Shown here: piece by piece, positions 7,501-22,500 of the stretch
Layout of the letters: every line of letters begins with the position of its first letter
Position numbering within the stretch: position 1 is the first letter of the stretch
Origin: Octopus bimaculoides
Taxonomy: Eukaryota
Direction: 5' to 3'
Length of the DNA: 63,741 bases
Assembly: GCF_001194135.2 (NCBI RefSeq)
Contig: NC_068991.1
Location: 17,931,613-17,995,353, forward strand
The notes under the pieces: model-generated
The model's input: the letters and a program-made list of their open reading frames with translations, nothing else
Told to the model about the DNA's origin: nothing
The model's database searches: none
Translations under genes and position numbers: made by a program

Positions 7501-10500
7501 GAGACATAAAGAAACCAACGCTAATTATCAAGTAGTGGGGAGGAGGACACAAACACAAACACAAAAACACCCACAAATACTTACATGCATATATACAAAG
7601 CGATACCCAAAAGTAACTGGAAATGTTCTCTGTGGTTCAAGCCTGTTGTAGTTCAAGCTTCCACCACTAGAAGACACTAAGGCATCAGTCTGCCAACTGG
7701 CATCTTACCATGAGGTCATACTACCATGTGGTGTGTCTGATATTCTTAAGATTATAAACCTGGTAAAGTACAGAACGAGTTATTACATCTGGTAAAGTAC
7801 AGAACAAGAAAATTTTCACTTAAAATATTGCAGCTAAGGATAAAATTTGAATATTAAAAATTATTTGATTTTAATTCACAAAGTAACATCATAATTAAAA
7901 AAAGTACCATCATTTTGTTAAAATATTGACACACTAGAATACTTACAAAATGAGAGCCAGAAGTACCAATATAGCTAAAGTTTTATGCGAAGTAGAATAG
8001 TATATGGTAGGTAAATTCTTTATGTAGAAAATAGGCATTGGGTCAAAACTAAAAATGTAAAGACTTGACAATAACTTAGGCAGTAACTCAAGAAAATTTT
8101 ATTGCGAAATCATATACTACTGTTATTTTTTATAACCTGTTTTCAAATTTCTAATTATTAACGAATAACTAAAAACATGAATTTTTTTAACGTGCAAAAA
8201 ATATTTTGAGTTATTTTTAATTTTTAATAGAAGTAACAAGTAATAATACATAGAAGTAATAACTTTTGATAAAATTTTTAGTTTTAATAAAAGCTAATAT
8301 TTTCTAGATCTAAATATTTTATTTGAAATTTTATCCTTAGCTGCAATATTTTAAGTAAAAATTTTCTTGTTCTGTACTTTACCAAATGAAATAACCTGTC
8401 CTGAACTTTTCCAAGTGTAATAACTTGTCCTGTACTTTTCTAGTTTTATAATCTTGAGAATATTATTTCTCTTGCTTGCATCTTTTCATGTAATGTGTGT
8501 GTGTGTGTATCACTTTCAAGTTTATCTCTATAGACTTCCTATAGAATTCAGAGCCAGTGCTGCAAGTTACAATGTTTCATAAACAAATATGTCTCATAGA
8601 CAAATATGTCTATGTAAACAATGTGATCAAAAAAATTATATGAAACATTGTAACTTGCAATGCTGGCTCTGAATTCTATAGAAAATCTGTGGAGATTTCA
8701 CTGCTAACACAACATTCTGTCTACAAAATTCACTTACAAACCATTGGTTGGCCTGGGGCTTTAGTAGAAGACACTTGCCCAAAGTGCCATGTAGTGGGAC
8801 TGAACTTGAAACTGCATGGTTGGAAAGTGAACTTCTTAACCTCACAGTCATACCCCATACCTATATGTATCTTTTATTTTTACTCATTTCAGCCTATAAA
8901 CTGTAGGTATATTGGGGCACCACCATTACTGTATATACATACATATATATATATATATATATATATCTTTTACACTTTTACTTGTTTCAGTCATTTGACT
9001 GTGGTCATGCTGGAGCACCGCCTTTAGTCGAGCAAATCGACCCCAGGACTTATTCTTTGTAAGCCCAGTACTTATTCTATCAGTCTCTTTTTGCCGAACT
9101 GCTAAGTTATGGGGACGTAAACACACCAGCATCGGTTGTCAAGCGATGTTGGGGGGGACAAACACATACACACACATATATATATATATATACATGTATA
9201 CGACGGGCTTCTTTCAGTTTCCGNNNNNNNNNNNNNNNNNNNNNNNNNNNNNNNNNNNNNNNNNNNNNNNNNNNNNNNNNNNNNNNNNNNNNNNNNNNNN
9301 NNNNNNNNNNNNNNNNNNNNNNNNNNNNNNNNNNNNNNNNNNNNNNNNNNNNNNNNNNNNNNNNNNNNNNNNNNNNNNNNNNNNNNNNNNNNNNNNNNNN
9401 NNNNNNNNNNNNNNNNNNNNNNNNNNNNNNNNNNNNNNNNNNNNNNNNNNNNNNNNNNNNNNNNNNNNNNNNNNNNNNNNNNNNNNNNNNNNNNNNNNNN
9501 NNNNNNNNNNNNNNNNNNNNNNNNNNNNNNNNNNNNNNNNNNNNNNNNNNNNNNNNNNNNNNNNNNNNNNNNNNNNNNNNNNNNNNNNNNNNNNNNNNNN
9601 NNNNNNNNNNNNNNNNNNNNNNNNNNNNNNNNNNNNNNNNNNNNNNNNNNNNNNNNNNNNNNNNNNNNNNNNNNNNNNNNNNNNNNNNNNNNNNNNNNNN
9701 NNNNNNNNNNNNNNNNNNNNNNNNNNNNNNNNNNNNNNNNNNNNNNNNNNNNNNNNNNNNNNNNNNNNNNNNNNNNNNNNNNNNNNNNNNNNNNNNNNNN
9801 NNNNNNTATATATATATATATATATGAAACAAGTGATTAAATGTCAGATACTCTTTGAAATAACGTTTACATATTTTAGGGACAATAACCAGAACAACAA
9901 AAATTATAGCCAGTTTTTATGTGTTTTCCAAAATTTTCTTTCAAAATTATTTTTTCATTTTTAAATTGTCAAATTGTTTACTCCCATTTTCTTTAGATTT
10001 GTCCCCAAAACATAGCGGCAAGACTGGTTTCAATGCAGATTGTTTACAAGAGGCAGTGAAGTCAACCCGTATCAGCAAGACATTGGACAAAACTGTCAAC
10101 TTCCGGGATATTGATCTGAGCCAGCTAAATCAGATAGAGCTCACCTGTTTTCTAACCAACCTTGTCAATATTCTCATCATCCACAGTTACATGTATATTG
10201 CTATTCAAGCTGTGAGTAAATTTATTTAGCTTTTTTGCTTTGTTTTGGTTTATTTTTTTATGGTTTCATTTGGGAGAAAGGGACTCTGTTCAAGTCCTTC
10301 ACAGGATTCCTAAGATCTGATGAATCTTGCGAATCCTTTGGTTGCAAACTTATGCTTGTTGGAAAACCATTGACAAGAAAGAAATTCCAGTTGGTAGACA
10401 TTTGGGGGAAGAAGTATTGGGTGTGATGGTTAGTGCAGGTCCAGGGAGCAGATTCTTGTTTCTATTTTTCTACATTTTCAAGGGTTTTTCTTCATAGTTT

Positions 10501-19500: not shown

Positions 19501-22500
19501 GAGGGGAATAGGAGGGCCCCATTCTACGCTCAGGTCAAGGCATAGAACGCAACCCGCAATATCAGCAGCGGGGCCCGACAGCATATGCTGGTTTACCCCC
19601 GCCACATCATGCTGTTTCTGTACCCCTTTGAGCAACATCAAAAGTCATCCATCCATAAACCCTCTCCAAGCTTTCCTATCATTTATAAACTCTCTTGCCT
19701 CTCTCACTCCAACACCTCTAACTACCAAAGCTTTCCTCACTCCATCCATCCCCCAAAAAAATGAGGTCTGCCTCTGGTTCTGCTGCCTACCACTTCAGCC
19801 TTCATCACCTTCCTTACCATCTGCTCCTCATCCATTCTTAGTGGCAATACTTCTGGCAGTGTGTGGGTTTGTCTTGACATCACATAATGATTGTAAGTGG
19901 ACACTAGAATAATGATGATGATTATGGTGATGGTGGTGATGGTGGTGGCAGCAGCACATCCTTGCATGTATAATAAGTACAGCCCTTTTTGTTGCCAACA
20001 AAGAAAGGCATTTGGTCATAAAATGCTGCTTTAAAAATTCTATCCTAGACATGCCAGTATGGAAAAATGGATGTAAAATGATGAGGAGGAGGACTGATCC
20101 AATATTATTTTTAATTCTTCATTATCAAATAATTCATGTAATTTGCAAAATTTTCCAAGAAAGACAAAGACAGAGGAAAAGAAAAATTCCTTATATAGAG
20201 AAAATAATGTTACAAAGAATAAGATAGTCAAAAGGAAAAGTGGTTTGGTGTTTGGTGGGTGACTTGAACTGACAGTTTCAATATTGATTCACTGATTTAT
20301 GTGCTGTGTACAGGTATTGGTTCCTGACCTTCTGTGTGAGTACCAACATGATTTCCCCAGCTCTGAGGAAGCCAAAGCCTACTATAACTCCCCGTGGGAG
20401 GAACTATTGCTGTACATTAGGGACCATGCTGATACTGAACTTGCAACCAAGTTAACTGATTTTCTTGAAAGTAAGTAACATGAGTTTCTTCAGCTTCTGC
20501 TTCCCTTTACTGCCCCCCCCCCCCNNNNNNNNNNTACTTGTTTCAGTCATTTTACTGTGGCCATGCTGGAGCACCGCCTTTTAGTCGAGCAAATCGACCC
20601 CAGGACTTATTCTTTGTAAGCCTAGTACTTATTCTATTGGTCTCTTTTTGCTGAACCGCTAAGTTACGGGGACGTAAACACACCACCATCGGTTGTCAAG
20701 CGATGTTGGGGGGGACAAACACAGACACACAAACATATACACACACATATACATATATACGACAGGCTTCTTTCAGTTTCTGTCTACCAAATCCACTCAC
20801 AAGGCTTGGTCGGCCCGAGGCTATAGTAGAAGGCACTTGCCCAAGATGCCACGCAGTGGGACTGAACCCGGAACTATGTGGTTGGTAAGCAAGCTACTTG
20901 CCACACAGCCACTCTCTTGTATTTCCTTTTCTTTTCTTCTATCACTATCCTTTTCTTCTCTCCTTCTTTCTCTTTCTTTGTTCTTTGCCCTTTTGTCTCT
21001 CTTTCTCTCTCTTCATCTCTAATCTCTCTCCGCCAACTTCTCACCTCTCCCCTCCACTTATCATTTGTTTCTCCATCTCTCACTCCTCTCCTTCACCCCC
21101 CACCTATCTCTTCACCTCTCACCTCCTCTCGTCTTCTCCCCTACCTCTTATCCTCTCCCCACCTCTCACCTGTCTCCACATCTCTTAACCCACCCTCTCC
21201 TTTGCCCTCCTGTTGCCCCACCCTCGTCTTCTGACTCCTCAGCTTCTCCCAACTCTGCTCCTCTCTATACCCACCTGCTCCCTGCTGTCTTCTTCTCCAT
21301 ACCCACCCTCTCCCTGCTCTGCCCCTCATCATACCCTCCCTCTCTCCATCCTTGATCTTTGCCCCACATTTTACCATCACTCTTCCTCCTCCCCATCTCT
21401 TACCTCTCTTCACATGTATTTCAGATCCCACAACCGATCGAGATTCAAGCCTGAAAGTGCTGCCCCAGACTATTGATACCAAATTCTTGTACATATTTGA
21501 TCCGAGTCATTTAAAGAAAGTGACGGAGAAGTCAGAAAGATCCCATACGGTGAGCTTGAACCATGAGCAGAACATTAAGTACAATGCTTCTTCCTCCAAA
21601 CTTGAAGCAGACTACTCAATGTTCAAACTGACCAGCAATGCCCTGGAATACATCAAATCTGAATCTCCACTTGTTGCCACATTGGTCAGTCTTGTGTGCC
21701 ATGACGACCTTGATGGCAACAGCCAGGAGGACAGTCTTGAAGAGGATGAACAAGCAAATGATGACGAGTCCTGGATGAAGTCCAAATCTTCAGTATCCGA
21801 TATAAGCCTGGTTGATATCAAAAGCTACCGCTACCAAAAACTGTCCGTTGACTTCCCTGTCCTGAAACAACGCTTGCTGCAAAACATAATACCCCTGGTT
21901 CAAACAGAACACTCGGATGTAAATTTTGGAGATGAAGCCCTGTTGAAGTTTATGTCTTCGGAAATTTCCTGTGATATCAAAATGGCCATTCTTAGCTTGC
22001 CAGACAGCAAGAAATACTTATCGGTGGTTTCTCGTTTACTCAATGAATGCATACATTCCAGAAAATGGCTGCAAGCGTTGAACATCATAGACAGTCTACC
22101 GGTGACTCTGAAACAAGAGAATGGTGATTTCATCCTGCTCCATGATTTCGTTCTATGTTGCCTTGCCAAAAAAGCGTGTGATGAAGAAGACAAAAAACTA
22201 GAGGCTTATGCCAAGATGTTCTACAATAGTGAAATCCAAGTGCGGACCATTTTGAATATTGTAAGGGGCCTTCCGTTGAAGAAAGGGATTGAACTTTTGG
22301 AGGCGTGTCTTTCCAAAGAACTTTCTGTACAACTTCGTTCAGCTGTGATTTCCAAATTAAAGCAACTCAAGATATTTTGTAAGGTATTTCAATTTGCTTT
22401 CCTTTCATCTTTTAGATATTTTGATTTATTTTATTCTCTTTTCTGTATTTTTCTTCATTTATGTCCCCTTTTCATATAACATACACACTAGGAATTTTCA

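Follow-up and report, generated by a model that had tools for sequence, protein, structure and literature searches.

The window analyzed here (the whole stretch of DNA studied, 63,741 nucleotides) comes from Octopus bimaculoides and corresponds to positions 17,931,613 to 17,995,353 of contig NC_068991.1. It consists of AT-rich animal DNA that is rich in repeats and interrupted by 12 assembly gaps, and one large gene on the plus strand spans nearly its entire length. This gene is a cephalopod orthologue of ZFYVE26, or spastizin (SPG15); the C-terminal two thirds of it are covered, whereas the first ~1200 residues lie beyond the end of the window. Spastizin is a hereditary spastic paraplegia protein, and nearly all work on its structure and function has been done in vertebrates. 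The subject of this analysis is a DUF547 (PF04784) module encoded between two α-solenoid segments of the octopus protein.

The spastizin gene and its exons in the module region

The exon model was built from stop-free stretches and splice sites. Nine exons on the plus strand, from 5792-5910 to 21425-22383, carry canonical AG/GT sites at 16 of 16 positions and concatenate into one open frame. They are listed below together with the other conserved domains of the same gene; Argonauta residues refer to the orthologue of Argonauta hians.

Exon A, 5792-5910, plus strand, supported by AG/GT sites and frame: spastizin α-solenoid segment LEKVAEELSLNLTHVIVHNCCPKI... with the N-terminal anchor, ending in phase 1 (Argonauta residues 1404-1440, 86% identity by tblastn; weakly aligned by profile to human 1217-1233, ENLSLSVPQVIVSCCCE)
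Exon B, 7201-7323, plus strand: 41 codons, phase 1-1, with the linker GGVIVLNNKG and the first module helix EKDVRTILTNLVHAMK (Argonauta 1444-1485, 88% identity by tblastn)
Exon C, 9997-10211, plus strand: N-terminal module helices, after which the Pfam DUF547 core begins, DIDLSQL...CFLTNLVNILIIHSY, with the N-x2-N-x4-H motif (Pfam match starting at peptide residue 122; Argonauta 1486-1557, 85% identity)
Exon D, 12070-12212, plus strand: variable surface loop, then the conserved YGYQVGQLGIV β-hairpin, ending in phase 2
Exon E, 14024-14109, plus strand: SIFDLRYILLRNGLPRPGLL..., a motif of the DUF547 'L..IE..ILR' type with Arg where bacteria have Glu (100% identical to Argonauta)
Exon F, 15020-15120, plus strand: ALDVCDPW...PDYRITFVISSGYTSSPPLQ, end of the Pfam DUF547 core (Pfam match ending at residue 281), with the bacterial RIHFALNCAxxSCP motif altered to R-I-T-F...S-S-P
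Exon G, 17464-17565, plus strand: phase 0-0, VLTPELLSHQLEIAERSYLSNTVSVNV..., helix and strand of the C-terminal extension common to stand-alone DUF547 proteins
Exon H, 20314-20470, plus strand: VLVPDLLCEYQHDF...ELLLYIRDH..., the 'WY..DF' motif and the last module helices, ending in phase 1
Exon I, 21425-22383, plus strand: last module β-strand DTKFLYIF, then spastizin α-solenoid again (LTSNALEYIKSESPLVATLVSLVC ... KQLKIFCK) in a continuous open reading frame (ORF) (Argonauta 1752-2074, 82% identity; distal part to human 1409-1521, E = 1.8e-4 with a four-sequence profile)
32768-32965 and 33813-33941, plus strand: FYVE zinc finger of the same gene, with the RRHHCRRCG motif at ~33819 (Argonauta 2367-2475)
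58317-58517, 59654-59707 and 61360-61527 (stop included), plus strand: last three exons, encoding the TPR_ZFYVE26 C-terminal domain (PF25569)

The C-terminal part of the product matched human ZFYVE26 (8yad_C) at residues 2037-2116 with E = 5.2e-22, and on sequence grounds the window gene is a spastizin orthologue. Its FYVE finger scored 59.5 bits in Pfam against a cut-off of 27.8, and PF25569 scored 123.4 bits on exons 58317-61524 (profile positions 2-122 of 123); the order of domains in the product is DUF547, FYVE, TPR_ZFYVE26. An earlier sequence-only reading of the same DNA had proposed that the exons of 9997-20470 are spliced in frame between spastizin segments, which is borne out by the canonical sites, the single frame and the collinear Argonauta orthologue. 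Its junction coordinates (5910, 7201, 9997, 20470 and 21425) recur exactly in the exon model, and eight of the nine peptides that it quoted lie on the plus strand where it had placed them; the ninth, YGYQVGQLGIVSIFDLRYILLR, bridges the splice 12212/14024.

Two orthologues were used to examine the exon model. The Argonauta hians protein GAB1601368.1, annotated as 'FYVE domain-containing 26-like', aligned in 32 collinear high-scoring segment pairs, with 79-100% identity per exon for exons A to I. A protein search with the spliced peptide gave a sole, exon-level match, P0001, which is the orthologue of exon I and led to a genomic locus closest to bivalve sequences (L001). This locus has the same exon order and strand, AG/GT sites and identical intron phases. 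Two of its exons are equal in length to those of the window (119 nt, as exon A, and 123 nt), one exon of 187 nt corresponds to exons E and F joined (86+101), and its spliced product matched DUF547 with 42.4 bits. The six exons of 9997-20470 sum to 804 nt, or 268 codons. As a block they are symmetric (phase 1-1), and the L001 counterpart of this block has the same phases and 813 nt.

Three of the assembly gaps fall within introns of the module region:

16743-17002: intronic gap between exons F and G, adjoining an (AT)n run
17946-18337: intronic gap between exons G and H, interrupting a 21-bp minisatellite
20525-20534: intronic gap of 10 N between exons H and I, following a poly-C run and 55 nt beyond (3' of) the donor at 20470

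The Argonauta hians orthologue named above (P0025, 3176 aa) contains every proposed junction and reads through both sides of each gap, as in ...SPEHSS/VMVPDLL... (the 17565/20314 join, VMVPDLLCEYQHDF) and ...MEFLE/NATTDRDS.... With tblastn, Argonauta residues 1404-2074 were all placed on the nine exons, with none left over. As the residues of the orthologue are fully accounted for across the gaps, no coding sequence is hidden in them. The 21-bp minisatellite, TAGCTCTTCCTCACCTCAGTC, occupies 17808-17945 and 18339-18551 (~6.6 and 10 copies) on both sides of the gap 17946-18337, and is probably the reason that the assembly broke there.

Three gaps in an exon model drawn from genomic sequence could suggest that the exons for DUF547 form a gene of their own, separate or nested, which gene predictors or the present model misjoined to spastizin. 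The 16 canonical, in-frame splice sites and the intron phases shared with the bivalve-like locus argue against such a misjoin, as do loci in which module and spastizin are not divided by introns. Two compact insect loci were examined, one of a Camponotus-like ant (L002) and one of a relative (L003). In L003, the DUF547 core is a single ORF (5122-5658); in the next stop-free stretch, 5717-7732, one frame is shared by the C-terminal extension, the anchor LLRYLEGHCWLLSYIV and the FYVE motif RRHHCRRCG. Similarly, the animal locus L127 (ENA ERZ26695902) encodes DUF547 and the following solenoid in one ORF of 829 codons. In the window itself, exon 21425-22383 holds the last module strand DTKFLYIF and the C-terminal anchor LTSNALEYIKS together, and the minus strand contained no sizeable ORF that would point to a nested gene. 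With full-length proteins from ten or more phyla or classes in addition to these shared ORFs, a separate or nested gene is extremely improbable.

Since both of its ends are in phase 1, the block could also be skipped (7323 to 21425) with the frame kept, and the module might then be an optional cassette, with long and vertebrate-like isoforms coexisting in invertebrates. However, the RefSeq isoforms of ZFYVE26 differ by 13-30 residues and not by ~270-330 (Haliotis 3174/3154 aa, Branchiostoma 3122/3109/3093 aa, Stylophora 3259/3230 aa), and in ants and L127 single exons join most of the module to adjacent coding sequence, which precludes clean skipping there. The small isoform differences and the ant fusions make a vertebrate-like isoform very unlikely.

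Extent and predicted structure of the DUF547 module

The spliced 668-aa peptide matched a single family in hmmscan, PF04784 (DUF547), with E = 3.8e-11 and 43.5 bits over profile positions 2-125 of 125. The DUF547 likeness suspected by eye is therefore a whole-profile match, which exceeds the curated gathering cut-off of 27 bits and lies well outside what chance would give. The module comprises ~300-320 residues. Its Pfam core of 125 positions is preceded by three helices at the N-terminus and followed by a C-terminal extension with 'WY..DF'; the coding span opens in the 3' portion of exon 7201-7323 and closes early in exon 21425-22383. The start at 9997 that had been assigned earlier is too far downstream, as the first helix (EKDVRTILTNLVHAMK) already lies in exon 7201-7323; it corresponds to residues 5-27 of the structure model described below and is conserved in 12 of 13 taxa (alignment A6). 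The C-terminal extension typical of DUF547 proteins, which had also been read from the sequence, is present and shares alignment columns with stand-alone bacterial members. Among these are the L..QL...A...YL columns of exon G, kept in bacterial and animal proteins.

Identity between the window and Argonauta was 83.9% over the module and 84.4% over its flanks. The module is as conserved as the solenoid around it, suggesting that it is under constraint. The 668-aa peptide gave no match against PDB at E<=1 with phmmer, so that profiles were needed to recover the similarity to human spastizin, and a two-sequence alignment of the module found nothing in a protein homologue search even at E<=10.

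The structure was predicted with AlphaFold2 (AF2) for the Argonauta module, residues 1465-1786, which is ~84% identical to that of the window and stands in for the window's own peptide, using a 13-taxon alignment. The model had a mean predicted local distance difference test (pLDDT) score of 81.4, a predicted template-modelling (pTM) score of 0.85 and 155 residues at pLDDT >=90. It predicts a compact α/β domain placed between two solenoid segments. It begins with three N-terminal helices, of which the first has a pLDDT of 84-97, followed by a helical N..N....H segment and the β-hairpin YQVGQLGVVS; the hairpin of exon D corresponds to model strands E131-134 and E138-141. Then come an S-S-P-P-L turn, a long helix (L..QL..A..YL; residues 207-225, in exon G), strands at WY..DF, terminal helices and a last strand, KFLFIF. 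Confidence was low in loops of variable length, such as that of exon D, which differs in length among taxa and falls below pLDDT 50 at model residues 111-117.

Foldseek of the module model against PDB returned 0 matches at E<=0.001; the best had E=1.2 and a TM score of <=0.19, and 8yad_C was absent from the matches. According to this model, the module has a fold that is without a solved representative in PDB, and the human protein is without a structural counterpart to it. Positions 198-279 of the module profile A6 (exons F to H; SSPPLQVL..QL..A..YL...WY..DF) resembled residues 50-134 of sigma-class glutathione S-transferase (GST)/haematopoietic prostaglandin D synthase (H-PGDS) with E~1. Kinship with GST/H-PGDS was rejected, given that this score is not significant and that Foldseek did not support it.

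Phyletic distribution of the module and remaining features of the window

A library of 1.84 billion proteins was searched with a profile of exon 21427-22383 and P0001, yielding 60 matches, among them full-length proteins. Pfam detected DUF547 with 25-65 bits in Argonauta, Potamilus, Bulinus, Owenia, Branchiostoma, Glandiceps, Saccoglossus, Patiria, Macrostomum, Camponotus, Stylophora and Oculina, the last three of which were identified via cluster members; Owenia (26.7 bits) and the N-terminally truncated Patiria model (25.1 bits) lie slightly below the cut-off of 27. For Argopecten and Haliotis, the evidence for the module is a match to a local hidden Markov model. The partial Physella protein starts downstream of the module and is uninformative. 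For Apostichopus, Lingula and Stegodyphus, the 10-kb flanks of the loci stop short of the module region, so that these taxa do not enter the comparison. Three complete proteins that were scanned whole, from two corals and one ant, contained DUF547, FYVE and TPR_ZFYVE26, in that order. Locus L127 holds a compact ZFYVE26 gene of ~17 kb (2489-19042), which is ~30% identical to deuterostome and cnidarian orthologues alike.

The module thus occurs in molluscs (bivalves and gastropods besides cephalopods), the annelid Owenia, the flatworm Macrostomum, the starfish Patiria, the hemichordates Glandiceps and Saccoglossus, the amphioxus Branchiostoma, an ant and corals. The sequence-only reading had regarded DUF547 as otherwise a domain of plant and bacterial proteins; this needs correction, as the domain is a standard part of non-vertebrate animal ZFYVE26. 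Judging from this distribution, the architecture is older than the split between cnidarians and bilaterians, and is still present in a cephalochordate.

Human ZFYVE26 (8yad_C, 2539 aa) is an orthologue with the same long α-solenoids, FYVE finger and TPR_ZFYVE26 domain, and human SPG15 has been described as α-solenoid-FYVE-α-solenoid (bioRxiv 10.1101/2024.06.14.598999). A four-sequence profile (window, L001, L002 and L003) matched 8yad_C with E=1.8e-4 in three collinear stretches: profile positions 6-36 to human 1217-1249 (ENLSLSVPQVIVSCCCE...), 398-422 to human 1294-1318 (...LTSSALAFLKSRSKLLATV) and 533-654 to human 1409-1521. Between the first two, ~360 profile positions, including all of DUF547, correspond to the ~45 human residues between 1249 and 1294. 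The distance from VIVHNCCP to LTSNALEYIKS is 394 residues in the window product, and that between the human anchors is 66, as VIVSCCCE ends at 1233 and LTSSALAFLKS starts at 1300; the earlier estimate, ~390 against ~55-60, was close to the measured values. A 13-sequence module profile gave no match to 8yad_C at E<=10. The human protein therefore does not align across the block, neither by sequence nor, as described above, by Foldseek.

Where human ZFYVE26 has a serine-rich linker of ~66 residues, the octopus protein has ~394 residues including the DUF547 module, and most non-vertebrate ZFYVE26 proteins are 500-700 residues longer than the human one. In zebrafish spastizin (2552 aa), a 'serine-rich domain, aa 1251-1342' has been described at the corresponding position. 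The site that is without the module in vertebrates is thus a serine-rich linker (human 1249-1294, zebrafish 1251-1342), which may be what the deletion left behind or a newly arisen regulatory (phospho-) region.

The presence of the module in Cnidaria, protostomes, Ambulacraria and amphioxus shows that it is ancestral, and its loss on the line to vertebrates is the parsimonious reading. Of the two options first considered, loss in vertebrates or gain in this lineage, the occurrence from Cnidaria to amphioxus decides for the former. If the module had instead been gained within molluscs or protostomes, through shuffling of exons into an intron of phase 1, this would account for the symmetric phase 1-1 block of 804 nt, which is what a shuffled module is expected to look like. 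However, the module occupies the same position in corals, ant, annelid, flatworm, hemichordates, starfish and amphioxus, for which one loss is far more parsimonious, and such a gain is highly improbable.

Taken together, the window very probably contains a cephalopod ZFYVE26 with an ancestral solenoid-DUF547-solenoid-FYVE-solenoid-TPR_ZFYVE26 architecture, from which the module was deleted on the way to vertebrates. Some observations weigh against this conclusion. The two human anchor alignments are each insignificant (about -5 to 0 bits), and are trusted because they are collinear with the significant stretch. Human was the only vertebrate compared directly (via PDB), and with tunicates and cyclostomes outside the comparison, the point of loss is imprecise. 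Finally, most of the orthologous proteins are gene predictions, so that constitutive inclusion of the exons is deduced rather than observed.

Several other features were noted in the window. One exon, which encodes Argonauta residues ~2752-2795 (...RFSEESNLDKVRFEECVHYLVTYGTYSNVVDFYRRNGHWYRATQFILDH), is missing from the readable sequence; it probably lies in one of the two gaps, 42531-43148 or 53638-54109, of an intron of ~12 kb (42148-54480). An abundant interspersed repeat, with ...SSKSTPGLILCKPSTYSIGLFCRTAKL... / ...HAVGLNPEPCGW in translation, occurs in introns in both orientations, often beside assembly gaps:

~8644-9060, interspersed repeat copy
10498-10733, interspersed repeat copy
20479-20885, interspersed repeat copy
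25560-26009, interspersed repeat copy
38257-38780, interspersed repeat copy
45238-45621, interspersed repeat copy
60172-61274, interspersed repeat copy

In addition, an intronic ORF fragment lies at 23505-23705 on the plus strand (DIAPSDYHLFCSLQNHLDGKNMNSVDEVRIVLEEYFS...RWKSIVENEGEYISD), which we take to resemble the C-terminal end of a transposase of the Tc1/mariner type.

Residue conservation and the possible role of the module

The PF04784 family includes stand-alone bacterial proteins, plant Lzipper-MIP1+DUF547 proteins (AT2G23700, UCHIGAWA), class IV glutaredoxin (GRX)-DEP-DUF547 proteins and Entamoeba PTEN-DUF547 proteins. With these, the window module shares N-x2-N, R...R, S/C-P-x-L, L..QL..A..F/Y and WY..DF, including the extension past the Pfam model. 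Unlike the other members, in which the domain is free or terminal, it lies in the middle of a solenoid in a protein of ~3000 residues and begins with three additional helices. Missing from it are the bacterial Y78, E146 and H189, both cysteines of C-x4-C-P and the C-terminal Y.W.LN motif.

To compare residues, 115 bacterial DUF547 ORFs were gathered with the motif IHFALNCA, and 60 of these were aligned with the animal modules. Among 13 animals, N76, H84, Y132 and G138 were invariant, and N79, S141, S199 and P200 nearly so. Bacterial members share the motifs A.W.N.YN, L..IE..IR, RIHFAL.C....CP.L and S.iF.WY..DF; relative to bacterial DUF547, N76, N79, R151, R187, P200, L..QL and WY..DF were kept, whereas Y78, E146 (to R, K or Q), H189, C194 and C199 (Ser in 11 of 13) were replaced. 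The module was acidic in all 13 taxa, with isoelectric points (pI) of 4.6-6.4, which argues against non-specific binding to anionic membranes containing phosphatidylinositol 3-phosphate (PI3P). The loss of residues conserved in bacteria, combined with this charge, would fit a module that is neither catalytic nor membrane-binding.

The domain has been found in a number of contexts: fused to PTEN in Entamoeba, to GRX and DEP in plant class IV GRXs, and in a plant protein that has no transmembrane segment and is located at the polar plasma membrane. In the literature mentioning DUF547, no biochemical activity is reported for any DUF547 protein, only expression or domain listings. Human spastizin partners SPG11 and AP-5 on PI3P-positive endolysosomes (bioRxiv 10.1101/2024.06.14.598999), and knock-down phenotypes in Drosophila are in support of this partnership.

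Against this background, the module could be an active enzyme, for instance a thiol- or redox-related one, tethered to the AP-5/SPG11/SPG15 coat. The fusion to glutaredoxin and DEP in plants fits such a role, as do the invariant N76 and H84, the nearly invariant N79, S141 and S199, and the faint, non-significant GST/H-PGDS likeness (E~1) near 'SSPPLQVL...YL'. However, both C-x4-C-P cysteines, the RIHF histidine and the IEH glutamate are replaced in every ZFYVE26 module, Foldseek found no thioredoxin, GST or other PDB fold, and no activity of a DUF547 protein has been reported, making an enzyme unlikely. Alternatively, the module could provide a second site for binding membranes or phosphoinositides, in cooperation with FYVE. 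This would agree with the presence of DUF547 in Entamoeba PTEN, beside DEP and in a plant protein of the polar plasma membrane, and with the action of spastizin on PI3P membranes. Such domain co-occurrence is circumstantial, however; the net acidic charge in all taxa (pI 4.6-6.4) is unfavorable for anionic lipids, and no lipid-binding fold was found by Foldseek. A lipid-binding module is accordingly quite unlikely.

A non-catalytic role is the one we put forward, tentatively: the module may be a docking site for a protein partner or a small ligand on the SPG11-SPG15 scaffold, although the chances of this being correct are well below even. The setting would be the SPG11-SPG15-AP-5 coat of those late endosomes and lysosomes that are PI3P-positive, and the module would probably be neither an enzyme nor a generic binder of acidic membranes; vertebrates would have dispensed with it or shifted its function elsewhere. 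More speculatively still, the ancestral AP-5/SPG11/SPG15 coat might have used the module for docking or regulation, and its loss, together with the serine-rich linker, might have rewired the recruitment or regulation of vertebrate spastizin. As an example, the acidic module could bind a basic partner, or gate a basic, auto-inhibited FYVE finger.

Several considerations count against a non-catalytic docking site. The bacterial invariance of H189 and C194 was built in by selecting sequences with IHFALNCA, which leaves only Y78, E146 and C199 as independent evidence. The strictly conserved polar residues (N76, N79, H84, S141 and S199) are likewise compatible with an active site or ligand site that has been kept. 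More generally, the proposed mechanism is a guess that draws on composition and on the residues lost.

The domain assignment itself is already automatic in databases, as the sequence-only reading had suspected: UniRef names a Macrostomum fragment 'DUF547 domain-containing protein', and Pfam matches are precomputed on the ant contig. Annotated non-vertebrate ZFYVE26-like proteins (Argonauta hians GAB1601368.1, Haliotis rufescens XP_046355808.2, Branchiostoma belcheri XP_019625924.1, Stylophora pistillata XP_022787398.1 and Camponotus floridanus XP_019883784.2) have the same architecture and relative domain positions, and the window adds another octopod-type member with no difference in kind. 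A search of 8.3 million papers found none linking DUF547 to ZFYVE26, and of the 28 papers on DUF547, the 25 that were listed do not deal with spastizin. The domains named in spastizin papers on Drosophila and zebrafish are limited to FYVE, nuclear localization signal, serine-rich and C-terminal ones. The window gene is thus a further member of an architecture that is annotated and undiscussed. What is added here is a splice model verified across gaps, a module shown to be ancestral and lost toward vertebrates, and a predicted fold that is unrepresented in PDB.

For spastizin, these results imply that the human protein is a derived form, which has lost a conserved, folded module of ~300 residues. 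Invertebrate disease models may carry an extra functional element, as the ant orthologue has the module. The insertion site marks a surface of the SPG11-SPG15 scaffold that has tolerated a whole domain for more than half a billion years, and serves as a pointer to an interaction surface. DUF547, a domain without known function or solved structure, is given a tractable setting in lysosome reformation and AP-5 trafficking. If the docking or regulatory role is correct, fly and other invertebrate models of SPG15 would differ mechanistically from the human disease protein, and DUF547, a widespread orphan domain, would gain its first defined cellular context.

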